Made by a program: the position numbers and the translations under genes. Under the pieces are notes generated by a model. That model did no database searches and was not told the origin of the DNA. It was given only the letters and a program-made list of their open reading frames with translations. From NCBI GenBank assembly GCA_900088475.1, contig FLMG01000154.1, positions 1 to 64,000 of the forward strand: DNA of 64,000 nucleotides, written 5' to 3'. The stretch comes from Hyphochytrium catenoides. Taxonomy: Eukaryota; Protista; Hyphochytriomycota. Shown here piece by piece: positions 2,789 to 50,677 of this stretch (positions are counted from its first letter, which is position 1; each line of letters begins with the position of its first letter).

Positions 2789-5681
2789 ATGCATGCGGCT
2801 GGGAAGACCAACGACCGGAAGAGACAGCGGCAAGAGTCTTCTTTTGCAGTCTTGACTGCCGTTCCTCTTGAGCTCTTGGTCAAGATCTTTGAAGCCTGTG
2901 ACTTGAGCTCCCTTCGGGCTGTTGCTTGCTGCTCTGCGTATTGTTATCATTTCCTCCATGACAATGAGGATGTCTGGCGCAAGGTATTCCTGGCAAGCAC
3001 GAAACACAAAGAGGCCATGCCGACACGCGGAGAGCTGCAGAAAATTGGTTGTGAGGTGCGTGACAGCCCATCTTTACCGACAGACAGTGGCAAAGAAGAG
3101 AAGAAGGGCCACGTGCAAGGGCTTAGATTACGCTTTTAACCACTAAGCGGTGAGCAGAGGGCAAAACAGAGAGAAAAGATATGGAAGGTGAACAAGGAAG
3201 GATAGCGTGCTAATAAGAGCCGCCCTAGAACCACAAAGAGCAGAAAGACGAGGAAAAAGGCTGCTTGGTAGTCCCCCAGAGGAAGACTATCAGAGGCAAC
3301 AAGGGTTAGAATAGAGGCCAAAGGACGTTAACGCCAGCAGTATATATATCAACCCCTGACCTGCCTCTCGTTCCCTCCCTTTCGGCCTATAGGAGGAGGA
3401 TATCGACTATCGCAAGCTCTACTTTGAGCTAGCATCAACCACACGGTGGCTGGGTGTCAAGAACTACCTCTGTCTAGATAAAAAGAGTTCCAAGCTTCAG
3501 GTGCGGGGTCGTGGGGCAACCTGTATGGACGTCTTGGACCGAGTAGTAGCTGTCGGAACAGAGGTGACGCAGTAGCACAGGTTGCTTGCAATCTCCACGC
3601 TTTATGTGCAGTCTCCAAGAGCTTTTGGGATCACTGACTCTGGCTTTATCATCCTTTTCGACAAAGCTCTTCCTCTTTCAAATTACCTTATCACACTTTA
3701 TCCTTCCTCGTTGGTCTATTGTCTAGTTCCTACAGCGATGCTGTCCGGTCGTTTCTCAGCCTCACCTTTTGTCGCCCAGAGCATTTCTCTACGTGAATAT
3801 TCCTTCCCGCCAAAGCTTCAGCTTTTGTCGGAAGACTGATGTATCGGCGCTGATTCCATGTCAGGGAGGCGAAGTCTTTCTTTGGGAAGATCTCCGTCTG
3901 GATAGAGGGAGCACTTTCTCACAAGATGCGAAGAGGAGGGGAGACATTTCCGCAACGCATAGGGCCTACCTAGGAACCGCACCAGTACGTCTTAGTACTT
4001 ACCGAGTATTGATTCTCCAATCACTATCTTGCAGGGACACTGCCCATTAAACTCTCTTCTTTACTCTGTACGCTTCCTTTTGGCGCTCGTTTGGATCGTC
4101 GTCCACAAAACTTTCGCTCCTTCCGCCTCCTCTCTCCGAACAGCTCGGCCTCTAAGCCACTCCTTGAACCTCATCGATCTGGACTAGGACTCTGCCGCTC
4201 CTTCGCCTCACTTTTTGCACACTGACGGATTGACCTCGTCCCTATATTGCTTCTCATGCTTCTCCAGCTCCAGCAAGTCCATTTAAACCGTCACACAGTG
4301 CTCTGCGTGGCGTCCGATGGACTTGTGCACGTGCTGAGTCGTCCTCCAAACTTTCGCCTGTTACGGCGTTTAAACCTTCACTGCAATGTCATTGGCCTGG
4401 CCCAGCGAGAGGACTGTCTGTTCTTTCTAACGCCAGACATGCAGACTTTGGACAGAAATGGTGCCAGGATTGCTGTCTATGACCTGTAAGCAGGTGACCG
4501 ATTAAGGTGTACAGCGTAACGAAGGCTCACTTTCTCTGTCCTTCCTATTGGCCTTCTCCACTGTTTAGTTACTCCGGCTCAAGACTCTATGACTTTTGTT
4601 GCGAAAGCGCAGTCGGTATTGTGTGTGGGACGGGTGTCTTTAGTCCATCTGTGGTCCTTGTGGGAGGGGAGAAGTCTGGAGGAGAAGCCCTAATCCATTT
4701 TGAGGCGGTCAGCCGGGAGGCAGGTGAAAGCTCTAGCTGGGCCTCTGCCAACTGTCAAGCGAGTGGAAATCCGATACAAATCGGGGCAGGACGGATTGTC
4801 TCTTTCCGCTCCTTAGTTTGCGAGTCGACTGGCTCCACGCTCCTGGTAGTCGCTACGCTGGAAAGGGAGGTTCTCGGGATAAGTCTTGAAAGTAAGCAGC
4901 ATGTCCATCTCTCTACCTTATTGTCAACATGGTTCCGTGTCTTTGCCTTCATTACTTTTTGTCAAGCTCGCTCTAGATAACCCTTCGATCGCTCATAACC
5001 ACTATGATCATTACTCCTTCTTGCTCGTTTCTCCCTCCTCTTCCTCTGAGTCGCTCCTGCGCTTGGCTCCTTTGCTCTTGATCTGTCCTCTATACATCTC
5101 AGGCCCTCTATCTCTTGCGTACCCATCTGTGCATCTATTGGTCTATTACACTGGCTATGTTGGCTCACTATATTGTGTCCTGAGTTAGATTGACCCATTT
5201 TCTTTCTCAATACCCCGCCTTTTCAGCCTACCAGCCGCTGTTTAGGTTCGCACAGCCCACCCGAGGCGTACTTGCCGACCTCTTGGGCTCGCTTGTCCTA
5301 CTTCCCCGTCTTGGGTTCCTAATGATGGTCAGAGAAAGAAGCTTCGTAGAGTTGCTCGTGGTCCGTTTGCAAGCAAACCTCAATAGAAAGCCAGAGCGAA
5401 GGAGGGCTCCACCCTCACAAGCTGCTCCGTCATTCTCAGGCCAATGGGGGAAGGAGGGACAAGGGCAGTCTCCCAGGAATGGACTACGTCCTCCACCTCA
5501 GCTTGTGCGTCGTTTGGACCTTTCAAGCGCAGTGCAGGACATTCGGTTCTATGGTCGTGGCACTTTGGTCTTGTGTCGCTTTCTTAATGGATCAGTAGCA
5601 GCTGTTAACTTGTCAGACAGTGGCGACCGGCGCATCATGCAGCTCAAAGAGTCATTGCAGGTGGCGTTGGCAGGAGAATAA
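2789..5681 (+). CDS. F-box protein with WD40-like beta-propeller C-terminus (multi-exon)
   Basis: F-box motif LTAVPLELLVKIFEACDLSSLRAVACCS...VWRKVF. Later exons have propeller-like strands (ATCMDVLDRVVAVGTE|GGEVFLW, VLCVASDGLVHVL, IAVYDL). GT-AG introns; internal exon boundaries approximate. Confidence 0.7.
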
Positions 5682-23831: not shown

Positions 23832-25106
23832 TCAGATAACCTCAATTTCTGAGGACGAGTAGAACTCATAGGAGGTATCCAAAGGCTCCATGAGCTCGTA
23901 GACAGGGGCTTGACGCTCAAGAGCCTGGAAGAAGCCCACACGCTCAAGTTCTTTCTGAAGCCATACGAAGCCTAGGCTGACGACAAATAGCCCTTGGAAC
24001 AATGCCAACAGAGCCGACATTTCTTCCGATAGGCCCTTATTGATGGTCACTCCTGAGACAAGGACTAGGAGATGGAAAGGAATGAGAGTGAAGGGAAGAA
24101 TGTCAGCAGACGTAGGTTACGTGGAAGAGCCTTCAAGAGTCAACGCTCACCAAGTAGGTCAAATGTCCCATGGACGAATACTGCAGGCAGGAGTATCTTT
24201 CTCCACGTTTCAGCACCGTGGAGGTCCTTGCCAATTAGACCGGCAGCAGTGAGAGCTGCACAGAGGCAGTGTAGAGGCAGGGAGACAATACTCCGCACTC
24301 CCGCTACGAGTGATTGCGCCTGTAGACCATGCATTGCTGACGAGTACCCAAAATTTTCCATCACAGCGAAGCCACAGCCTGCCGCTACAAAGTAGACTAA
24401 AGTCGCTACCGGATTTCTATGATTCGTAAAGGTGAGATCCGTTGGTTGAGTGACGTCGTAAGGCGATCTACTGCATGTGGCCACGGCACTCTTGACGCTT
24501 TCTTCGACCAATGCAGCTACCGCGTAACTTTCTAAAAGCAGAAATAAATAGAAACCAAGATTGTGCTTGAGATTGAGATCAGAGAGACTGCTAATAGTCT
24601 CCGCCTCTGTATCCGGGTCATGCAATTGCTGCATTATGCTGGGAAGTTGGTCCCAGAAGCATATCATGCCCAATGGGATAGTGACAAACATCTCCAGGAG
24701 AGACGCGAAGATCACCCCAGGTATCAGACCCAAAAAGAACATCTTGACCAGAGTGTCTGCCGACACGAGTTCTCTGTCAAGTGCAAAGTTAAGGTACGTC
24801 CGCCTCCCAAAACCTGACTTCTGACTAACGTGTTACCTGCAATGTCGCCAATAGCCGAAGAAGACAAGCAAGCCGACCGGTAAGGCCACCAGCAAAAGGA
24901 CAATGACGTTCTTAACATTCTCCAGAAGACTCTACATGGCGGATAAAGAGTTTGCCGCTAAGTGTTAGCAATGATGAAGCTCTGGTTAAAGTCCCTTCCA
25001 AACGTACCAGGACGACGGCGGTAGCGAGGAGAGTCAATAGAAAGACTGAGGTCCTTGAGAGATCCAAGGATGATCTACCCTTGTAATGCATACAGGAAAG
25101 CAGCAT
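23832..25106 (-). CDS. PrsW-family (M82) intramembrane glutamic/metalloprotease, 4 exons
   Basis: All four family motifs present: ALVEESVK, GFAVMEN, PLHCL and VHGTFD. Multiple TM helices. Introns at about 25006-24933, 24836-24775 and 24150-24053 keep the frame. Confidence 0.8.
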
Positions 25107-29171: not shown

Positions 29172-32100
29172 ATGCTGGGTAGAGGAAGTCTTGTCGTGAG
29201 CCGTCAGCTGCGTAGAATCCAGTGCAGACAGGCTCCCTCAACCATTCTCCTGCAGTCCCAGGTAGGAGTCGGTTCAAATGGCTTCTCTTAGTCGTTATTA
29301 GTTTGCCAACCTCATTTACCTAATATTGGAATAGTCTGCAGACTTACCAGGCAGAGCACGATGGTACTCCAGCAACGCAGATGTTGGAAGTGAGGTGAGC
29401 ACGTTGATCAACCCGCAGCCTTTAGCAACTGTACTGGCATTTTCCACAGCTCGAGTATCTCTGTCTCTACTCATCACAGTCTGGCTTACTATGTTCTACG
29501 GCACAATCGAGCTGACGATTCTGCCGCTTTGCCACTTGCAGACCGAGCGACCTCGCTATGTGAAGCTCTTCAACTCTCTGACAGGCACCATTGAGGAGGT
29601 CATCCCTCAAAATGGCAAGCAGCTGACTTGGTACAGCTGTGGGCCGACTGTGTATGATCATGCTCACCTTGGACATGCGCGGACATATGTCTGTCTTGAC
29701 ATCCTACACCGGGTCCTGAGAAACGGCTTCGGGTATAATGTCTTCTTGGTTCTTGGGATGACCGATATCGATGACAAGATTGTAAAGAAAGGATGGGTAA
29801 GTGCAAGTTGATTGGAGACATGGACGAGAACGGAGAGATACAGAGGGGGAGGAGAGAATATATAAAGTGAGAGCTTCGTTCTCAGGCGCCTTCGTCTTCA
29901 GGCATGTGCATATACTAGTCGCTGCCTATCGACGTCAACACCTTTAGGCGTTGTGTCTGCTTGATCCTGAACTTAAGTTTTGTCTTCTACCTAGTGCTTC
30001 CTTGTTGTCCTATGCCTCCTTCTCGCTGCCAAATCCTTCGCCAAATCTCCGGTGCTCAGTGTGATCGCTACCTTTGACCTTATATTCTTTCTGCGTTCAT
30101 CTCCCTCCCGATGCGCCGACACTTCCTTTTACCCTAGCGATGTGTCGTCGCTGTTATTTAAATATGCTTTGAGCTGTCATCCGTCCCCTTTGGCGCTCAC
30201 TGTCCGCCCGATTCCTCGCTTATTACTTTCATTGTAGGAGCTTAACGCCAAAAGCAATGCAGACTTTCTCTCCGTGGCTCGAGGCTACGAGCAAAGCTTT
30301 CTGGATGACATGAAGAGGCTGAACGTTCTTCCTCCGGCAGCCATCGTACGGGTCAGTGAGTATGTAGACGAGATCAAGGCGTACATACAGGGCATAATAG
30401 ACCAAGGATATGGCTATGAAGGTACTATCACGTACAGTTTGCCTTTTCCAATTTCTGCATCCTTTTCTGCCTTGTGGCCGACGCCTCTTTGATCTTTCCT
30501 GTCGACGTTGAGGGTTGTCTCCTCCCTTTCTGCCACCTCTTCCCTATCTTGCTCCTTCATCTGACACCTTTGCACCTTGGAATTCACCTCTAGCTAGTGA
30601 TGGCTCGGGAGTGTACTTCGACACGCTGGCTATGGGTCCGCGATATGGCAAACTAAGTTCCCATAAGAGGTGTCACTCTCTCGCTCTGTATGTCACTGTG
30701 TCTGTGCGTAACCCTCATTACTGTTGCCATTGTGTTCGTAGTGCGGATGCAGAGTCTGTAGAGGATTCTGACCGAATAGCCCTGGCAAAGAGAGACCCTC
30801 GAGACTTCGCTCTATGGAAGGTGGGCACCTTGGAACATCTTCTTACATATTTATCATGCAGCATTGCCGTCTCTCACATCTACGTTTTGTCTCCACAAAT
30901 TCCCAGAACCCTATCTTCCTTTGCTTTGCAGAGATTGAGTGGAACGTTCCAACTGCATAGGGCTGTAATATACGTTCTTGCTCCTGCTGCCGTTCTCCAT
31001 TTCTACTTTGGGCCTTGTCTCACCATTAAACTGGCTACGAGCCCTTACTCGTGGTAATCGTCTTAGGCTGCGAAGGCTAATGAGCCCTACTGGCCCTCTT
31101 CGTGGGGCCCCGGCCGGCCTGGCTGGCACATAGAGTGTTCTGCTATGACACATAGCCTGCTGGGCCCAAGAATTGATATGCACACCGGTGGAATTGATCT
31201 CAAGTTCCCGCACCATAATAATGAGGTGGGATGCCTTCCTTAGCGGCTCGCCACCTTCGACACCAAGGCACCTTACCGTCCTTGCTCCCATCCTCCTTCG
31301 GGCAGCAAAACGGGGCCTTCTTCCTTTTGCCGGGTACCTTTGGTCCTGCTATGGTCCTGCTGCTGGGATCATGCAATTGTTTTCTCTTCTTTTCCTTCTC
31401 TTGCTTAGGTGAAATCACTTCCATAGTCTCTCTCTTCTGTCCTGAACCCTTTCCCGAATCACTTGTCGGTCATCCCCTACATATAAAACCTAGTGTTGGC
31501 GTACTTCTTTGAAGCTGTTCCTGCCAATTTGTCTATGGACCTGCCCTCACTCTCTTCCTTCCTTCCTCTGCGACCTGTCCTCAAACTGAGTCAGATAGCG
31601 CAATGTGAAGCACACAACCATGGGGAAGATTGGTGCTCCACCTTCGTGCACACAGGCCACCTATACATAGAAGGCGCAAAAATGTCAAAGTCCCTCAAAA
31701 ATTTTATCACCATTCGAGAGTTCCTCGAGGTAAGAAAATACTCCTTTGGCCGCTGCTTCCGTTCTTCTCTTACACTTAGACACGCATTTGTACGCTCACC
31801 CGTTTGGTCGGCCCTACTCCTACAACCCCTGCATTTGCTAAATCCTGACTCCTTCTATAGCCGGCCAATGAGCTTCATCTGATAACTGTGACAATCAATA
31901 TTCCTTATACTTTTCGTGCAACTGTATGCTTATCTCTCTCTTTCTTATCCCTTGGCTGGCTCTCTGACCGCCGGAGGACATCTTGTGCGCTTTTAGTTCC
32001 CTAAAACCCTAGCTTTTGACCCCTGTCCTAAGACCTGACCATCTAAGAAACCTCTTGACTATCCTACTGACTCCTTAAAGACCTACACACCTCAGCAGTT

Positions 32101-33823
32101 CAGAGTTTTCTGCCTGCTGCATAAGTACCGTGCGCCAATACACTTCTCCGAGGTAGGTGGTCTTCCCCTTCGGAGATGCACAAACCTCTTTGTCAGCAGC
32201 TCCACCCAGTAGCCCGTTATTCTGCTTAAGGTCCTTCTCTCACCAAAGATGGTCCAATAAGTTAGTCTCTCTCGTCTGCTTTCAGAGCCAAATGCAGGAG
32301 GCTTCCAGGGTCGAAACTAAACTCAAACAAGTAGCAGAAAGAGTCCGACATTGCATAGAGGAGGTACTTGATCCACTCAGTCCCGGCCTTTGCTGTCTCT
32401 CGTAATGTCATTTGGTCCGATTTCGAGCGGAAAAGCTTACTACTGACATTCGATACACTTCATGGTCCTGATCTTTCTAGCTGCACAAGCATCAGCCCTT
32501 GTCAAAAAGGTGGCGAGAGACGGAGCGAGAACTTCATAGGGCACGAGAGAAGGCGGAACTGGGCTTCTTCTATTCCCTGGCGGATGATCTGGACACACCC
32601 ACTGCGCTAAAGGCAGTTTTGGCCTTCAGCACCCACTTAAATCAGTACTGCCATGCCGCTTTTACAAACCCAGGTATTACATGTCCTTAAGCGCGATGGT
32701 GGGCAAGGGCTCGTTTGGAGGAAATCAAGCTATTGACAGGCAATAGAGATTAGTAAGCCCTGTGTCCAACACACTAGCACTGGCTAGGGAGGCGCTACAG
32801 ATTATGGCCGTTAGTGGGTGGACTCTATGGGTTGGCCTGAAAGGAGGGACATATACGAGAGATATAGTCAGCCAAGGAGGTAGTCACACTTCTTCGAGAG
32901 AAGCTACCCAAAACCGATAGGCCAGGTCAGGGGCCACGGCACTTAATATACGGTGGAGAGCAGCTGCATAGAGATAAATGAGGTTGTGATAAGGTGGGAC
33001 CCATCGACCTAACGACAACTGCCTCTAGGAGAGACGCCATTGGAACTACTGCAATCCTGCGCGCTATTTCTCGTCCGTGTCTTTAGCCTCCTTGGCCTTG
33101 ATGATGTCGCCGGGGTGATTCATGGCGATCACAGCACCGTAGACAACGAGGAGACAAACCGAGATCTGCTCGACGAGTTCGTATCCTTCCGCGCTGAGAT
33201 ACGAAGACTTGGTATTACCGAGAAGCATAGTGAAGCTGGGCGCAGAGCCCTTCAGCTCTGTGATGGAGTTAGGTAATCTTGATGGCAACTTCGGTTTCCC
33301 CATCACAGTTTCTCTATTGCTTTACCGCTTATTTATCAGCTGTCTTGTGAAGCACTTTACCGATCCTGATCCGCCTCATCTCGTTGGGACAGGGAAAAGC
33401 TGCTGAACGAGCATCATATAGCGGTGATGGACCTTCCTGATGGCACCTCAACATGGGAACGCTCTTTCTCAACTCCGACAGATCAATTTGTGGCTGAATC
33501 TCCTTCTTCTAAAGCGGAACAGCCGAGTTTCTCCCTGGATCCTTCTGAGCTCTTCAAGACAGAAGAGTACCAAGGCCTCTATAGTAACTACGACGATAAG
33601 GTGGGTACCTGGCCGATCTAAGGCTAAACACAATTCCTACGACCTCTGCTAGGCAGCGAGTAAGTGTGCAGGAGTCCAGCGGACTAACCCTTGAATCCGT
33701 AACACACAGGGCATTCCCACCCATGATGCTCAAGGTGAGGTACTCAGTAAGAGCGCCAGGAAGAAGCTCGTGAAGAAGCACGAGAGATACAGCAAGGGCT
33801 GGCAGAGGTCGAAGTCTCCATAG
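29172..33823 (+). CDS. CARS2: Cysteine--tRNA ligase, probably mitochondrial, multi-exon
   Basis: [18 protein letters not shown] (HIGH), [33 protein letters not shown] and KMSKSLKNF. The spliced N-terminus [20 protein letters not shown]...|..RARWYSS is presequence-like. Confidence 0.93.
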
Positions 33824-33958
33824 ATCGAGCTCAAAGTGCACCTTCGACTTTTTCCCTTAGATTCGCCCATTGCACTCTTTATCCCTCCCCCAACATGTCA
33901 GCTTCGCAGTCAATCTAATTGAGGAAGAATAGAACTTTCCACGTAAATAGTGGCGGCT

Positions 33959-35131
33959 TTATTCCTTTTTACCGACTGGGTGCATGCTCCGGTTCCCGCA
34001 GCATTCTGCATTCTCCTTCCACACTCGTTCATCACCCTCGTACTGCTCTAACTTCCAGATAGGCACAGTTCTCTGTATACCAATAGCAGCATAGGGAAAA
34101 CATAAAGAATATGTACCGTGAGTTAGACTATCCCTTGAAAGAAGTACAGAAGACGACAAGTGAGCATATGTGAAGTCTCCATCCCAGTCCACTAGTTTTG
34201 GGGTTGCCCTTCTTCCTCTTTGAATCACTGGGCGACTATAAGATATAAAAGCTTCCTTACCTTGAGCTCGTCAATTGCGAAAGAGACCGCGTCCAGAGCG
34301 TCTCTTCTGTGCGGCGAGGAGATAGCGATAACGACAGAAGCTTGTCCAATGCCCACTACCCCAAGTCGATGATAGAGCGCGATATGCATCACCTCTGGCC
34401 ATTGAGAGCGGATGGCCCTGCAAATCTTCAGCAGCTCTTTCTCTGCCATTGGAACATACCCTTCATACTCTAAATGAACAACTTTTTTGCCTACATAGGG
34501 CAGATGACGCACTTTAAGCGAGAAGTAGAGAAATAGAGACCGTGGGGACAGGAAGGATTTCCACGAGAAAGGAGAGATGGGACAAGAGAGCAGACAAAGA
34601 CGGATGTTGACCGGACCTCCTTGCAAAAGAACCAATGCACGGCTAGCTCGGGAGGAAGACAGAGGAATACAGATAAAGGTCAGAGAATCGAGAATGGTAC
34701 CGCGGAAGTTGTCTCTAGTTGTCCCAATAAAGGTAGCCGTAGCTCCAGTTTTGCCATCTGCCACTTCATCCACTATTTGCTCAACACTTAGAGCTTCTTC
34801 TCCCACCCAGACGATGTCGCGGAAGCCTATCAGGGAAGAAGCCACACAAGCAGAGCAGGAGGATAGTGAAATGGTTAAACGTGAAGGTAGAACTCTTCAG
34901 GGCGCTCGTCAGATCATAGTCCACAAAGAGAGAGTGTAAGCGTCAGGGTACCTGCCTAAGTAGTGTTGGATTATAGGAGAGCTCGGAAAAAAGAACAGGC
35001 ATAGGCTGACTATAAAGAGATCCTTAGGAGGTCATCGCGCTGGCTAATGCAAAAGTCTCCGGCCAGAGTGTGGAACCCACGAGAAGAAGAAGGACCTACT
35101 GATTACCCTTGGTTGTGGCTGCAGACTCCAT
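33959..35131 (-). CDS. MOCS2B: Molybdopterin synthase catalytic (large) subunit, MoaE-like, 164 aa, 4 exons
   Basis: Exons 35131-35107, 34826-34701, 34490-34261 and 34072-33959 total 495 nt. Motifs [33 protein letters not shown] and ELK|[11 protein letters not shown]. Confidence 0.93.
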
Positions 35132-35149
35132 TTTGCCAAAGTCTAGCAC

Positions 35150-35654
35150 TTATCCTCCACTAATGGGCGGTATCAAGGCCACTTCGTCTCCCGTTTTCAG
35201 CGGCACCTCAGTGCTGATATACTCAAGGTTCACGGCCAGGTTGATGGTGTCGACGATCTGGGTGCGCATGGATCAGGTGCAGTTGATATGGGGTAGCGCA
35301 TAGAGCCGTCAGTAGCGTCATAAAAGACCCTTCAGAATGAAGCAGAATGCATGAAGAATGGTCCATCTAGGAATGGGCGAAAGAAATTATCAATGAGCAT
35401 TGAACGTAGGCTACGACGTGGTAAAAAGCTTGCAGGCCGTTGGATCTAAGCCGTCTAGGACGCTGAAGACTGACAATCTCTCAAGACCGCCGTAGCCTTA
35501 CTTCTGCAATGCCTGGGAGAAGTTGCTTCAATTCCTGCCTGAGCGCTCCTGTATTAGCCTTGGCCGAAGGTAGTTGGACTGACTTTTCTCGAACTCCAGC
35601 AAGATCTTTTGCCCTTGCAAAGAACAGAACCTTCACTGTCACTGCGTCGCTCAT
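35150..35654 (-). CDS. MOCS2A: Molybdopterin synthase sulfur-carrier (small) subunit, MoaD-like, 86 aa, 2 exons
   Basis: Exons 35654-35502 and 35257-35150. VKVLFFARAKDLAG...LAVNLEY...GDEVALIPPISGG* ends in the ubiquitin-like Gly-Gly. Confidence 0.95.
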
Positions 35655-36483
35655 CACTACGGCTCTCTTGCTCAGAGGAGGCTCATTGTACAGACACTGC
35701 TTAAACAATGTACAGAGGTGAAGATACCCGACAGTCACCTGGGGGCTAAGACACTATGTTAGTCTTAACCTAGTCTTGACCTCGTCTGTTCAGCGATCAA
35801 ACGCTCTGCACTTGTCCGCAGGTGCTTCTCAGACAAAGAGTCTGACGATCTTCAAATGAAGATTCTGAAGTGCATGATTTGTCAATGGATGACGAGAAAA
35901 TCAACTCTACAGAATCAAACAGATAAATCACAGCTTAGTTCTTTGGGGGTTCTTATCCTCTACCCCATGCATTTGTATATCCCAGCTATTTAGGGTATCT
36001 CCTATTATATTAGAGAGGCAGTAGTGCTTTGAAGCATTGGTATCGCATTTGACTGCCCTTTTGTCCGAGGGGAGCTTTGGATGTGTTGGTTGGGCTGCAG
36101 GAGGAGTTGGGCTGACAGGAGGGAGGGGAGGTTGGAAGACAGGCACAGGCACAGGCAGGAAAAGTCACTCAACAACCTTTCTCATCGCTCTTCTTGTCCT
36201 CGTCAATCAGTGGTGCCTCATCGGGATGTTCCCACTTGTCCTCACGCCTGCCTCTGCCCTTTACATGCGTGCCCTCTCTTGCACCTACGGCCGTAGACTG
36301 AATCTCTTGGTAGTCAGAGTCCAGAGTTCACATCACTCCTAGAAGTGTCACAGACATCCGCGGCGTCTGAGCTTTATACACTGTCGGTCGCAGAGGGGTA
36401 GTCATCTCTTTTGAAGTCTCTCCTCTCTTCCAGGCAGTATCCCACGTGTAGAGAGCGAGAGCAAGTCATAACAGGCAGCGACG

Positions 36484-38195
36484 ATGGTAGGCAACGACGA
36501 AAGCTGGTCTCTTCTAACGTGTAGAGGTTGACGCTAATGCTTCTTAATGATGCTTCAGGGTAAAGCGAAGAAGACGAGAAAGTTTGCTGCAGTGAAGCGG
36601 ATGATCAGCCCTAAGGATCAGCGACTGTAAGTACAAACTATTCACGCCGGCCAGGGCTTGTCAGGCGGATAGAGAAGAGACTGGCAAGTTCGCCTGAGGG
36701 AGAACTCTTGACTGAGTCTAATCATGCCACAGAAAGACGGTCCAGAAGAAGCTTGACGAGAAGAAACAGAAGAAAGAGCAGAAAGAAGCACCTCGTCAAG
36801 TGTAAGATACTCCATTGTCATCCCCCGGTTGACCAGATGTTGTTCCTCCATGTCCTTGAACATTAACTACGCTGCTGTTTCTTGGCCCATTGCTCGACAT
36901 ACCTGTTAGGACTGCCCCTCTCTCGTCTTGGATAAATTGTCTCCTGGGTGTTAAGCCGTGCTCTTTAAGGGCTGCCGTATGGCACCTTGTCGCTGACTTT
37001 TTGCTTCTAATTGCTTCCATCGCTTTTAGTCCGAATGTACTTCCTTTTCAGCTTTGATTCTTCGAGCTAACTCATGGAGCGTATCCTCTTCTTGCTCGGT
37101 GGCTGTCTCTATTCTCCATGGAATCTACAACCTTTATTTCTTGTATGCCCTGCACACATCACTGTTTGCCCTACTTTGATTGTTCGAGCTAGCTCATGGA
37201 GCGTATCCTCTTCTTGCTCGGTGGCTGTCTCTATTCTCTATGGAACTTACAACCTTTATTTCTTGTTTGCCCTGCACACATCACTGTTTGCCCTGCACAC
37301 ATCACGTCCTGCAGCACCCAAACTCCTTCAGTGCTGTTCTTCAACTATAATACCCAGCTCGGGCCTCCCTACTACGTCTTAGTGGACACGAACTTCATCA
37401 ACTTCTCTATTAAAAACAAGCTGGACATTGTAAAGTCCATGATGGACTGCCTTCTGGCGAAGGCTATCCCTTGCATCACGGACTGTGTGATGGCGGAGCT
37501 TGAGAAACTTGGATCCAAGTATAGAGTCGCCCTGAGGTGCGTTTCCACACACAATTTCGTCAATAGTCCTTACTAAGCTTCAAGAAAGAGGGAATGTCTG
37601 TCCTTGGCTTGTCCTCTCATTTGCTTCGGCTGTCCATTATGAAGTTATGATGTCCTAAAACCCATGGTATTTTTATGCTTTGGCTCCGTGTCTTTTGGGT
37701 TGTCCCGTTCTCATCCCGTTAATGCTGTTTCGTCGTTTTCATGGCCTAACCAATTCTTCCGCCCCTCCTGAAGGCTTGCTAAAGACCCAAGGTTTGAGAG
37801 GCTACCCTGCACACATAAGGGCACTTACGCTGATGATTGCCTAGTTGAGAGGGTTCAGCAGGTAATATTTAGGACAGCCTTTACACTTCTGCCCCACTTG
37901 TCTTCCGTGCTCTTGATCGTCAAGCGCTCTATCTTCCGTTTGCGTCCTTACATGCCTCTTGTCTCATCTCCTCAAATATCGCATCAGCCATTCTTCGACT
38001 CTTGATTAACTCTTGTTTCCTTTCCGCTCGTTCCGCGGATTTCCTCTATGACTCCTTCAGCACCGCTGCTATCTTGTCGCCACGTGCGATAAGGAGCTAA
38101 AGCGGCGAATCCGCAAGGTGCCGGGTGTTCCTATCATGTACCTGTCTCAGCACAAGTATGTGATCGAGAGGATGCCAGAGGCTAACGCACTCTAG
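36484..38195 (+). CDS. FCF1: rRNA-processing PIN-domain endonuclease FCF1/UTP24
   Basis: ATG-only first exon, intron 36487-36558, then [42 protein letters not shown] and [19 protein letters not shown]. Confidence 0.95.
37052..37305. repeat. 122-bp tandem duplication plus 21-bp sub-repeat in an FCF1 intron
   Basis: Near-identical copies start at 37052 and 37174; the twin ORFs 37074 and 37196 are offset by 122. TGTTTGCCCTGCACACATCAC is repeated near the 3' splice site. Confidence 0.93.
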
Positions 38196-41398: not shown

Positions 41399-44300
41399 AT
41401 GTCAAGCCTGCGACTGCCATTACGTTTGCTTGCCTCTGCTGGGCGAACGCGAGGCTTACTTCGCAAATTGCCAAGCCAACATGCTGCCGCTATGTCGTCC
41501 ATCGGTAAGTGCTGAAGGTGGACTCAATCTCTATCTCCACCCCCGGCGGTATCGTGTCTAGCATCTTTCTGTCGCTCTTGGACATATCTTGAGGTTTCTA
41601 ACCTCATCTCCTCATCACATCCTCCACTTGAATGCTATCCTCTGTCGACCTGGCCTTCTCTCTTTCTATAGGTTGTCTTCTGTTTCCAATTCCTAATCTT
41701 TGTCGCGTCTGTGCCGTTAGCCGCCTTAATCTGGCTTCTGTTCCTTCTGTGTTCTGATAATCCTCTCCTTTGGCTCTGCCTTTCGCGCAATGTTTCCCAG
41801 CCAACTTTCCAGGCGGGCAAGCTGTGAGGCTGGTAGAGAAGCTGGAGATCCAGGTGCCATCTTTCGAAGAGCGCATCCCAGCTTACAGAGGTAGGAGAAC
41901 ACAAAGAGCATCATCTTTAAATACCGGCATTCTAACTGCGGTGTGCACATGGCAGTGATGGACGAGGATGGGTCAATAAGGCCCGGTGCCACTGTTCCAG
42001 AGGTCCGTCTCTGTCTCTCTGTCTCTCTCTCCCTCTCTCTGTGGCCTCATTTCGTTGTGACCTCCCTCTGGATAATAGCTGCTCATCTGGCTCACTTGCG
42101 GTGTCTCTCTGAATCTTTCCACTATACAAGATTCAAAGGCGCTTCTATCTTGTGGCAAGCAAAGCGACAGCTTGGCCTCTTTTCCTTACTCATCTTTCTG
42201 AAAATACTTCTTTCATCATCTTCATCATCCTTCGAGGGCCCTGGCGTGTTTGCTGATATTCTTGGTACTCATGTCTTGACAGCTTTCAGACGATGATCTG
42301 CTACGAATGTACCACGTGATGGTCCGCTTACAGAACATGGATCAGATTTTCTATGATGCACAGCGACAGGTGCGACGACCCAATACCGTTCTCAACTCTA
42401 CGCATCATGCTCCTCCGCTTTCCAGCCCCTCATTGTCTGTTTCTCACACTGAGATCTAGTTCTTCCTTTTTTACGGCTCGTGGAACTGATGAAGTGCTTC
42501 ACATGCTGACCTCGCTCTGCCCTTCCCATACGACCCTCTCCGGCATCGAAACAGGGAAGAATCTCATTCTATATGACAAGCATGGGAGAGGAGGGCACAC
42601 AGATCGGCAGTGCCGCTGCCATTAGCAATCGTAAGTGTTGGGGCAAGATAGGGATGGGATGTGATGTGAACGAATCTTCTAAAGTCAAGCGTATATGAGG
42701 TTCGAGAGGAGGAAAGAGAATATAGAGGGCTATCTGAATACAGGCGGAGAGGGCTAGAGAGAGATGAAGAGCCTGTGGAAGCGTGATATGAGGGTGCCCT
42801 GAAGGCATGATAAGGTGGAGTCAGTAGACCGCTGTCCATAGACTATGAATTGACAAGTCTTCTGTTGGCATAGAGGACACGGTCTTCGCGCAATATCGCG
42901 AGCCGGGCGTTCTCATGTGGAGAGGATTTACTCTAGAGCAGTTTGCCGACCAGGTATGGGGCTCCAGCTTCGTTAAATCCTTCGGTGTTCCTAGGTCTGC
43001 TCCACGCTCTTTCTAAAGCACGTCAAACGACTAATTCTCTACCTCTTCCCCGCTGTGTCAAGTGCTTTGCCACCATTGATGACAATGGCAAAGGACGGCA
43101 GATGCCGGTACATTATGGTTCGAAAGCTCTGAACTATCAGACGATCTCTTCGCCTCTGGCCACACAAATTCCTCAGGTAAGAAAATCTAGCTTCGCTCTG
43201 CAGGAGAGGGAGATTTTGTCACCTTTTCTATCACGATTGCCAATAGTAGCGGTAAATAATCACCAATGGCTGCTCTTCTCCTTTCTGGTCCATCTCTGCT
43301 GCTCAGGCTGTTGGTGCTGCTTACGCCGTCAAGCTGTCGCCCCAGGCGGGAAAGCAAATCGCAGTGTGCTACTTTGGAGAGGGGGCAGCTAGTGAAGGAG
43401 ACTTTCATGCTGGTGCGACAGATCACTTGAGAAACGCGCGTTACGATCTTTTCCTTGCTTTCCTCGTTTGTTACGTTTCGCTTTGCGCTCTCTCATTGGC
43501 GGTCCGTCTGTCTCACCGTCTCCCTGTCTACTCGGAGTGGAATTTGACTGACATGAGACGTTGTCGAATGCTTCTACCTACAGCACTAAACATGGCTGCG
43601 ACGACCAAGAGCCCAGTCCTCTTCTTCTGTCGAAACAACGGTTACGCTATTAGGTATGTCAGCTCTTGCTGGCCCTCTCCTTGCATTTCCTACGAGCACA
43701 TGAGTATAGGGTCTGTCGGGAAAATGGGCTCACTTCCCACGGGTCATAGAGGTTTTCCTTACGTCTCTTTGGCCGTCATTCACCTCCCTCTGTGTGTTAC
43801 TCCTACGGGTCCCCACCCCTGTTTTCCTTTCTCACTCCGTTCTTTTTCATTCCCTTCACAGTACCTCTGTGGTGGACCAATTCGCAGGAGACGGCATCGC
43901 TTCCCGTGGCGTCGGCTACGGGATGGCGGTCGTCCGGGTTGATGGAAACGATATCTTTGCGGTCTATAACGCCACTAAGGCAGCGAGGGAATACATTCTC
44001 CAGACAGGGAAGCCCATTCTTTTAGAGTCGATGACGTACAGACAGGGTAAGTAGCACTGGACCACAGCCGCTCTAGGTTCTCCAGCGCTGTTGACCTATC
44101 TGTCTGGCCCCTAACTTTGCTCTGCTCACCCTCTTAGGGCATCATTCAACCTCTGATGACTCGACACGATATCGCGATGTATCTGAGATCAAAATGTGGA
44201 AGGACAAGCACTGCCCCGTCAACAGAATGAAGAATTACCTCATTGTAAGAGCGAAACGGCAATTGGGAGAGGGAGGACTGGGAGGAGAACTAAAAATTAG

Positions 44301-44746
44301 GAAAAATTTAAGGAAGCTAGACGTGTGATATTCATAACACTTTTTCAGGCCAAAGGACTGTGGAGCGATGCTCAGGAGCAGACTCTAAGAGACGGAGAGC
44401 GACAGAACGTCCTCACCGCCATGCAACAGGTAACGAGTCCGCATTTGGGACTGATGGTTCCTCTTCACTCATCATCTTGTGTTGTCACTCACTCTTTCTC
44501 ACTTCCAAGGCTGAGAGAAAGGAGAAACCACCAATGGACTCTCTCTTCGAGGACGTCTACAAGGAAAAGCCAGCCCATCTCCAGGTAAGTTGCACTTGAA
44601 ATCTTGACGTTGTCTATGCCTCAATCTATGGCTCATTCCTCGACCGCTTTCTTTCGCTTTGTGTCGTGGTACACCAGTGGCAAGAGAAGAAGATGCTAGA
44701 GCACGTTGCCAAGTACCCAGATCACTACACGATAGGAGGACACTAA
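41399..44746 (+). CDS. BCKDHA: 2-oxoisovalerate dehydrogenase E1 alpha subunit, mitochondrial
   Basis: Presequence [23 protein letters not shown]. Motifs [67 protein letters not shown] and GHHSTSDDS. Confidence 0.96.
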
Positions 44747-48000: not shown

Positions 48001-49855
48001 TAAGAACAGCACTGAAATGTACCGAAGCTCAGAACGGACACCCAGGCAACAGCAAAGTGGAGATATGAAGACTTCGCGACGGCATGAGCTGTTGAGTTTG
48101 GGGATGGCTACCTCCTCCGTCTCGGGATCTTGTTCCACATCACCTGATGGCCAGATGTGAGCCTCGGTCCTGCCTCTGCCATAGTTACAATGCCCCTTCG
48201 TAATGGCGAGTACCCTACCGAACCCTGCTGAAGCGTGGCATTAGAATACCGGGGGGGCCAGGGGCCAAGAGGAAGAGAGAAAAAAGAGAAGAGAGAGAGA
48301 AGAGGGAGGGAGAGGAGTAACCTTGAGCTTTCAAGATTTGATGGGAAGACGGTCATGGGATGGTTTTCCCACTACACTCTTTCACCTGCATCAGAAGGTG
48401 ATGATGATGCCCGAGAAGAAAGATTTGTGGCTATCTCCAATGCTCTTCCCAGGGCCCGCGGAACTTCGTCTTTCAGCGGGTGGCAGCGTTGAGCGGAAGC
48501 ATCTGCCAATGAATTGAGAGCCTGCAGAAGCTGTGGGCGAGCCGTTGAGCAGGGTGCTGTGATAGGGGCTGTGCCTACAGTCGAAGCCATGGAGGGTGGT
48601 GGCCAGGTAACGGACGGGAATGCTCAGAAGCAGCGAAGAGTCCCGTGGCAAGCCCCAGGGTAAAGAGAGACAGTGCACCAAGGAAGAAGGAACTCTTTCA
48701 AAGTAGCAGAGAGGGAACTGTCAAAGGAAGGCAAGCATTGAGTGCCAAGAAGCAACCCGTGTCAACCTTGAAAGAGGCAGAGCAGGAAAGGAGTTAGCAA
48801 GCCGAAGCAAAACAGTCAACAGTACTATCATCAACGATGACAAACGAAGGGAAGAAAAGGGGAGGATACTTCTTCTTTGTACATCATCTCGCTCTTGCCT
48901 TGTCCTTTTTGGATGACTTCCCAAGCCACCACCGGGATGACACGCTCCTCTCTCAACTCTAGCGCTCGGACCACAGAGGAGAACGTCAACAAGCTAATCT
49001 TAGGATCTCCCAGCTCGATCAGGAGCTCGATCAGCTTGTCTACTCCGTGGCATACGCCTCTTACTTCATCAGGAGAGAGCGTCTCGTCCACCACCAGCAC
49101 GAGGTTCGAGCAGGAGATAGGACATGACCGTGTAGAGGCAGAACCTATGTAGAGGTGATAAGTGCGGAGTAAGTGAGCAAGAAGCGGGAAAGTGAGACGA
49201 AAGGAGGGAAAGGTTGATAGATCAAAGAAGTGAGATGGGGTTAAGATACAAAGAGTTCTTCACTAGCCAGACCAGCAGGACGAGATAAGGAGCAAGGATC
49301 GACTGTCCTGGGCTCCTTGGGAGACTATAGGGCTTGGCCTCCTTCTTAGACTATAGGGGTTGACCAAGAAGGATCGGCAGCCATAGAGGGCCATCGGTGA
49401 CTATGTATCAGCTTACTCTGTCTCTGCTGGCCTCCACTATTGCTGCCGTGATGCCCAGAGCCATAGAAGCACCAGTCAGACACTTTCCTCAGCTCTGGGA
49501 AGAGCTCTGCAAAGCTAGTATGAGTCTTCCTATCGAGAAGAGCCGGCGACCAGCGAGGGTTCACGGCGTGACACACCGCACAGGCCCAAGATCCGACAAC
49601 GCCATCCACAACGCGACATTGCCCGCTAATAAAAGCACCACAGGCGGAGCACGAGGGCGGAGCTCCGGAGCCATCAACTCCCTGAGAAACGTTGTGAACG
49701 CAGGGGATGTTGGCCTCATTGCTCTGGGTACAACTGGCAAGGCCTACAGCGGAGAGAGGAGAAAGAATAAAGCCGAATGGAAAGGAAAGGTCTGAAGTGG
49801 ACGAGGCAAAGGGAGAAGGAAAGCAATCGCTAGTAAGCTGGAGTGCGTCTGCCAT
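45095..49855 (-). CDS. Divergent Sec23-family COPII coat protein (zinc finger, vWA trunk, gelsolin-like)
   Basis: Zn finger PPSCSACGAFI..WACAVCHAVN, trunk LVLVVDETL and PRALGRALEIA, gelsolin LIVLDAGVHIF, and GSDLRFISSR|LAPQHKD. Both ends approximate. Confidence 0.8.
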
Positions 49856-50677
49856 GTTCCTACGCCCACGAGAGCCTTCCACAGTCTCCTTGTCCCTCAT
49901 TGTCCGAAGTACAATCTCCACCCAGATCTAGTTCTAGGCGCCATAGCAGTACGAGGCCGCGGATCCAGCTCCTAGGATCTTATCATCAACATGGAAGCCT
50001 CAGATATGAAGATCCGATGAGATTTCTCTCTCTCTCTTGAACTTCAACAGCTTCTTCAATGTACTCGGGACGTTAGCGGCTGCATTAGGCTCAGCTAATG
50101 AGCATTCTGATGAGAATCTGAAGTCCCTTTCCTCCTCCTCCTTATCGGGAAGGCAGAGACCGGCGCTCGATGGGAGGAGGGGCAGATATGTTTGATTGAT
50201 AGCTTCAATGGCCTTCTACATCGCGTACAACGCAATGTGAGAGACACAATGAGGTGTTTATTGGTCCCCTGATGATGGTTGAAGAGCTTGTGCTGCACTG
50301 CAGCGAGGGCGACGATGATATGTAGAGCAGCTATTGCGTGGGAGCAAAAGAAGAGAATCTGCCAGCAAGCAACAGCATCGCTTTGTTGAGAATGTATTAG
50401 CGTTACTTGAGCGGAATAAACCAGTGTGTGACCGTCAAGGAGGTGAAAGGTTAAATAAATATGAGCGAGCGTGGCCTCCTACGCCAGTAGTCAGAGCTTA
50501 GGGGACATGGGCGGGCCATCAACAGTGGATCCCACAGCTCCGACCAAAGCTCCTTGCCTGCAGGTAGGACTTCAGATAGCCGCGCGAGCTTTTCTCTTCT
50601 TAAGTGTCACGCGCATCTGCAACGCCAGACATCATGTGCTGCTGTTGCCTAGAGACGTTCTTGAATGACCAACCAGG

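Follow-up and report, generated by a model that had tools for sequence, protein, structure and literature searches.

A two-gene locus encoding both subunits of molybdopterin synthase was analysed on the minus strand of the window, by which the whole 64,000-nucleotide stretch of DNA is meant throughout. The locus is probably expressed as one mRNA, from which the upstream gene MOCS2A (MoaD) would be translated from the first start codon and the downstream gene MOCS2B (MoaE) would be reached by leaky scanning. The open reading frames (ORFs), their identity and spacing, the ATG-free interval between the two starts, the neighbouring genes and the reappearance of the layout elsewhere were observed directly, and it is from these that we infer co-transcription and leaky scanning. 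A single message read by leaky scanning would explain the 18-nt gap between the ORFs, the tiny first exon of MOCS2B, the ATG-free leader, the better context of the downstream start and the recurrence. It is plausible that the locus adds a member to the known class of MOCS2-type bicistrons, as both proteins were identified and the sequence prerequisites for leaky scanning are present.

Gene models of the two subunits

The features of the locus are as follows, in the order in which they are met on the minus strand.

35655-36546, no strand assigned: divergent intergenic region of about 890 nt, common to MOCS2A and Fcf1 (plus strand; ATG near 36547-36550)
35672-35686, minus strand: candidate mini-uORF ATG AGC CTC CTC TGA (MSLL, then stop), 4 codons, 32 nt 5' of the MOCS2A ATG
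35502-35654, minus strand: MOCS2A exon 1, with the ATG at 35654 in the context GTAGTG-ATG-A
35258-35501, minus strand: MOCS2A intron of 244 nt, GT..AG (GTAAGG...CCCAG), with 6 ATGs and 3 initiator-like YCAYTYY heptamers
35150-35257, minus strand: MOCS2A exon 2, with C-terminal PPISGG and then TAA (35152-35150)
35132-35149, minus strand: inter-ORF spacer GTGCTAGACTTTGGCAAA, 18 nt, in frame with both ORFs and holding no further stop
35107-35131, minus strand: MOCS2B exon 1, 25 nt, MESAATTK plus G, start context GGCAAA-ATG-G, donor AGG/GTAATC, phase 1 join
34701-34826, minus strand: MOCS2B exon 2, without an in-frame ATG
34261-34490, minus strand: MOCS2B exon 3, the conserved catalytic core
33959-34072, minus strand: MOCS2B exon 4, TAA stop at 33961-33959
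33958-33963, minus strand: AATAAA, overlapping the MOCS2B stop, the sole sense-strand copy between 35800 and 33500

The MOCS2A ORF comprises two exons encoding 86 amino acids and is closed by a TAA stop at 35150 immediately after ISGG. Its N-terminus, MSDAVTVKVLFFARAKDLAG, agrees with those of MoaD homologues, and a search for an in-frame ATG upstream of 35654 yielded none. The Pfam ThiS family was matched over the full length of the protein (residues 9-86, 5e-14), and identity to named MOCS2A proteins amounts to 46-53%. ORF 1 encodes the MoaD/MOCS2A sulfur carrier with its C-terminal Gly-Gly.

The MOCS2B ORF comprises four exons encoding 164 amino acids, with GT-AG boundaries at all introns and a closed frame. 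It was matched by the Pfam MoaE family at 1e-37 and is 63% identical to oomycete proteins and 56-59% identical to vertebrate MOCS2B. Exon 3 alone matched the human MOCS2B structures 4ap8 and 5mpo (E 5e-25) and is 69% identical to an oomycete protein in a tblastx comparison, and the position of the intron after exon 2 is common to the MoaE genes of Phytophthora and Aphanomyces. Because exon 2 holds no in-frame ATG, a start exon further upstream is needed, and the ATG at 35131 is the only one 5' of exon 2 that is combined with a good donor in the right phase. ORF 2 encodes the MoaE/MOCS2B catalytic subunit, downstream of ORF 1 on the same strand. The gene models proposed for both proteins in the initial annotation were thus reproduced, in that the exons could be reassembled, the frames closed and the ThiS and MoaE families recovered. 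No identical protein was present among the matches returned by homology searches with both window ORFs.

Other connections between the exons were tried and rejected. Five further ATG-plus-GT combinations in the right phase were considered as first exons of MOCS2B, and their donors are poor (for example ATC/GTCGAC, GCC/GTGAAC and TTA/GTGGAG). Direct splicing of MOCS2A exon 1 onto MOCS2B exon 2, which would give a fusion, was discarded on account of mismatched phases (0 versus 1).

Three DNA sequencing runs contain the locus, and three unclassified runs of roughly 1 Mb under the same species label yielded no sequence that matched it. Relative to the window, the DNA run X2 carries an A>C substitution at 35015, which lies in the first intron of MOCS2B, and an insertion of G after 36532. 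The X2 contigs split into high- and low-depth variants near the MOCS2B stop (about 33931-34023), which suggests allelic variation around that stop.

Start codons, intervening sequence and transcription signals

Reading of the minus strand bore out the gap of 18 nt that had been claimed between the MOCS2A stop and the MOCS2B ATG at 35131. In the spliced sequence, ATGs occur only at positions 0 and 279, leaving none in the 276 nt between them, as opposed to six in the 244-nt MOCS2A intron and three in MOCS2B intron 1. The chance of an ATG-free stretch of this length was 0.8% in a mononucleotide shuffle and 0.6-0.7% in a dinucleotide shuffle, and 1.3-1.9% of all 276-nt segments in the 64 kb are free of ATG, in agreement with the initial estimate of 1-2%. 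However, the depletion is less striking than the shuffles suggest, because 23-50% of MOCS2A recodings were also ATG-free when synonymous codons were resampled with the amino acids held fixed. An internal methionine is absent from 20 of the 37 MoaD homologues, whatever their gene arrangement. The depletion is real, but it lies at the level of the protein, which has no internal methionine, and is not significant once the protein is fixed. Taken alone, the ATG-free interval supports leaky scanning without settling the mechanism. Among bacterial-like moaD coding sequences from metagenome loci (n=55), which hold about three ATGs on average, two are ATG-free, both with more than 70% GC, and none of the 50 with a GC fraction below 0.7 is ATG-free. 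Of the eukaryotic MoaD coding sequences that stand alone, two could be examined as DNA, and they contain two and three ATGs.

The MOCS2A start carries G at -3 and A at +4, versus A at -3 and G at +4 for the MOCS2B start. These contexts are as first quoted, but their description as weak and strong holds only in part, since the -3 G of MOCS2A is a purine and the context adequate rather than clearly weak; the comparison follows the general Kozak rule, which may not be the consensus of this organism. With this reading of the contexts, a stronger downstream start and an interval without ATGs, the latter subject to the effect of protein composition, are the prerequisites for leaky scanning present in the sequence.

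Between the divergent Fcf1 gene and the convergent cysteinyl-tRNA synthetase gene, the minus strand carries no unit other than the MOCS2 pair, and 35655-36546 is the presumed promoter region of this pair. The Fcf1/Utp24-like gene occupies window positions 36547-37600 on the plus strand and diverges from MOCS2A. The cysteinyl-tRNA synthetase gene (31493-33621, plus strand) converges on MOCS2B, and its coding sequence can be recognised as far as 33621. In a sense-strand scan of 2.3 kb, neither AATAAA nor ATTAAA was found after the MOCS2A stop, and the placement of the single AATAAA at the MOCS2B stop hints weakly at one unit, as the poly(A) signal may differ in this lineage. The candidate mini-uORF 5' of MOCS2A could be relevant only if transcription starts upstream of it.

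On the favoured reading, the transcript would run from the intergenic region common to MOCS2A and Fcf1 to a point past MOCS2B, and removal of the four introns would leave an mRNA with MOCS2A first and MOCS2B 18 nt later. Some scanning 40S subunits would initiate at the MOCS2A AUG, with its -3 G and +4 A, whilst the remainder would bypass it, encounter no AUG for 276 nt and initiate at the MOCS2B AUG, with its -3 A and +4 G. A single message would in this way supply both subunits of the heterotetrameric enzyme. Three exon junctions follow the MOCS2A stop, an arrangement that by animal rules would invite nonsense-mediated decay, and human MOCS2 has the same geometry.

Related loci and alternative explanations

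Linked MoaD and MoaE genes were found at three non-animal loci outside the window.

L005, 4612-5618 of a 91-kb GC-rich, intron-poor eukaryotic contig (Logan): MoaD ATG at 4612 and stop at 4962, MoaE ATG at 5001
L012, 24-1056 of a 1450-nt contig (Logan): MoaD at 24-269 and MoaE at 298-1056, separated by 28 nt, the two starts having no ATG between them
L094, 4567-5726 of Porphyra umbilicalis KV919111.1, both genes on the same strand: ThiS at 4567-4875 and MoaE from 5001, 125 nt apart and called as two genes

In all three, MoaD precedes MoaE across a short spacer, and the interval from one start to the other is free of ATG. In L005, the spacer measures 38 nt, and no ATG is present in the 385 nt between the starts or in the 237 nt upstream. 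In L012, which was not counted as a transcript, the upstream start reads TTG-ATG-C and the downstream start CAA-ATG-G. The Porphyra umbilicalis locus lacks ATGs both between the starts and in the 153 nt upstream, which is less surprising at its GC content of 77%; the pair is a candidate for an unrecognised bicistron. By a Kozak-type comparison, the downstream context is the better one in the window, L012 and L094, and equals the upstream one in L005. Three further linked loci from metagenomes (L013, L014 and L023) group with animals in the tree, and of these L013 holds two intervening ATGs and L023 one.

A search of the 4-6 kb upstream of MoaE recovered no MoaD in Phytophthora kernoviae, Aphanomyces euteiches, Ectocarpus, Tribonema or Bolivina, and the Achlya copies of MoaD and MoaE lie on different contigs. 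As the genes are separate in Phytophthora, Aphanomyces, Achlya, Ectocarpus, Tribonema and Bolivina, the enzyme can function without their linkage. The best matches to the window MoaE are from oomycetes and brown algae (58-63% identity), and a quick maximum-likelihood tree placed the protein, weakly supported (SH-aLRT 82), as sister to oomycetes in a group rich in stramenopiles; the MoaE proteins of L005 and L012 fall into the same group. The window organism is likely to be a stramenopile outside the oomycetes, and it might be the hyphochytrid Hyphochytrium catenoides, which the position of MoaE beside the oomycetes and DNA runs dated 2011 and 2017 would fit. On these data, the linkage of MoaD and MoaE is patchy: animals, a red alga and at least three stramenopile-like lineages have it, and in many others the genes have been split. 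The arrangement had initially been described as either anciently conserved or convergent; its presence in L005, L012 and the red alga favours ancient conservation over a one-off event, although adjacency is absent from oomycetes, Ectocarpus, Tribonema and Bolivina.

Several observations were made in passing at other MoaE loci. Three consecutive MoaD-like ORFs lie directly upstream of MoaE in two bacterial-like metagenome loci (L075:1712-2908 and L077:1443-2639). On an oomycete-like contig (L004:5001-6465), an ORF with a CEP19 domain was found just 3' of MoaE. The protein P0020 bears both CEP19 and MoaE domains and is probably a merged gene call.

An account in terms of two separate but overlapping units is rather unlikely. 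Here, the first intron of MOCS2B would hold the ends of the MOCS2A transcripts, and a promoter within either the intron or exon 2 of MOCS2A would drive MOCS2B. The main sequence argument for such an internal promoter is the clustering of YCAYTYY heptamers in the MOCS2A intron: three, starting at 35376, 35361 and 35340, fall within 43 nt (35376-35334) where about 0.3 would be expected, against a window average of 1.2-1.4 per kb, and none is present in the 300 nt scanned upstream of MOCS2A. Under this account, the ATG-free interval would be a by-product of a small methionine-free protein, and the synonymous resampling does remove most of the significance of the missing ATGs. However, a transcript beginning at these heptamers would carry three to five upstream ATGs (at 35366, 35352, 35321, 35301 and 35269) before that of MOCS2B, and the initiator-like motifs are unaccompanied by the flanking-promoter-region (FPR) motif, the combination of initiator and FPR that forms the oomycete core promoter being absent from the entire locus. 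The lack of AATAAA or ATTAAA after the MOCS2A stop also speaks against a separate end for MOCS2A transcripts, and the intronless loci L005, L012 and L094 share the layout, all ATG-free, with no intron that could hold a promoter.

A bicistronic mRNA on which MOCS2B is translated by reinitiation, either after the MOCS2A stop or in delayed fashion after the mini-uORF (35686-35672), with ribosomes skipping the MOCS2A AUG 15 nt past that uORF, is quite improbable. The very short spacer would suit the former and the position of the mini-uORF just 5' of MOCS2A the latter. Reinitiation would not need a first ORF free of ATG, and after an ORF of 86 codons it is normally inefficient. Furthermore, the spacers vary from 12 to 125 nt across the related loci, and no comparable uORF is present upstream in L012 (23 nt available), L005 (237 nt) or L094 (153 nt). 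Readthrough of the MOCS2A stop, giving a MoaD-MoaE fusion that would be cleaved after Gly-Gly in the manner of mycobacterial MoaX, was given very little credence. Natural MoaD-MoaE fusions exist, with PDB entry 9jbd (MoaX) among the structure matches, and MOCS2A and the MOCS2B ATG share a reading frame across a spacer that lacks a second stop. However, an in-frame spacer arises by chance in one case out of three and the frame is not conserved, the spacers of L012, L005 and L094 (28, 38 and 125 nt) being out of frame; L013 has a second stop, and no readthrough context was identified at the window locus.

Known systems and origin of the arrangement

Leaky scanning of one mRNA, the preferred reading here, is the mode described for animal MOCS2, whose bicistronic mRNA is read in this way (PMC9607355, PMC3923131, PMC9370521, PMC2276209). 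The human (MOCS2A/MOCS2B) and Drosophila (CG10238 Mocs2) genes share with the window locus the same proteins, the small-subunit-first order and the use of one strand, whereas the host is an animal in those cases and stramenopile-like here. The human ORFs lie in different frames with a 77-nt overlap (PMC9607355), whereas those of the window are 18 nt apart in the same frame and show no overlap of the human type. The absence of overlap had been put forward as a contrast to animals, a distinction that did not stand, as the animal-like metagenome loci L013 and L023 are non-overlapping as well. Human MOCS2 is known from transcripts and translation, whereas the window locus is described from its sequence. 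According to its RefSeq gene summary, the subunits of human MOCS2 are reportedly now considered to be made from separate transcripts that arise by alternative splicing.

Polycistronic nuclear genes of green algae (Gallaher et al. 2021, PMC7896298; PMC11291117) likewise have colinear ORFs, a short spacer, an AUG-free interval up to ORF 2 and a stronger context at ORF 2. Removal of ATGs and a weaker first context are experimentally supported rules for the leaky-scanning bicistrons among them (PMC11291117). By the general Kozak rule, the window locus displays the same sequence features, with its 18-nt spacer, no intervening ATG and -3G/+4A versus -3A/+4G at the two starts. The green-algal loci belong to another lineage and are backed by Iso-Seq, proteomics and reporters, whereas the present case is described from genomic sequence. 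The molybdopterin synthase pair is not mentioned in the main text of the green-algal survey (PMC7896298).

The bacterial moaD-moaE operon has the same order and adjacency as the window locus, and moaD is directly upstream of moaE in most of the bacterial-like metagenome loci. However, bacterial moaD is not depleted in ATG (2/55, as above) and both genes are translated independently, and, unlike the operon, the window genes contain spliceosomal introns and encode a MoaE that falls inside the eukaryotic group of the tree. Separate genes for the same enzyme subunits are found in plants (CNX6/CNX7), Aspergillus (cnxH/cnxG) and oomycetes, the last of which hold the closest named relative of the window MoaE (63% identity, with an intron position in common).

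Reviews of the molybdenum cofactor present bicistronic MOCS2 as a human or animal rarity and call the far-apart genes of plants enigmatic (PMC9370521, PMC6321594), and a literature search returned no report of a non-animal MOCS2 bicistron. Now that a stramenopile-like protist, a red alga and two more stramenopile-like contigs are seen to share the gene order, a short spacer and an ATG-free first cistron, the origin of the layout becomes a testable question, namely whether an ancestral linkage was split repeatedly or the arrangement converged repeatedly. We tentatively entertain, as a possibility that is somewhat less than even, that the MoaD-then-MoaE bicistron is the ancestral eukaryotic state. 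It would possibly be a relic of a bacterial moaD-moaE operon, with the first cistron purged of AUG for cap-dependent scanning, and would persist today in animals, red algae and several stramenopile lineages after independent splits in plants, fungi, oomycetes, brown algae and others. The shared layout would also place an enzyme that needs its subunits supplied 1:1 on the short list of conserved eukaryotic nuclear bicistrons and would offer a natural test case for leaky scanning beyond animals, green algae and viruses. On the practical side, gene callers annotate one ORF or neither at such loci.

Further from the pair, a multi-exon E1-dehydrogenase gene was located at 42337-44587 on the plus strand, with exons that are individually 65-90% identical to those of the Phytophthora kernoviae copy (L001). 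Its distance from MoaE is less than 8 kb in the window and 2.3 kb in Phytophthora kernoviae, and the orientation differs between the two. This linkage may be remnant synteny with an inversion and could bear on the loss of MoaD linkage in oomycetes. Elsewhere in the window, an ORF resembling PrsW-family intramembrane proteases (24143-24832, minus strand; Pfam 9e-14) and an exon encoding a Sec23/Sec24 zinc finger (49349-49927, minus strand) were observed.
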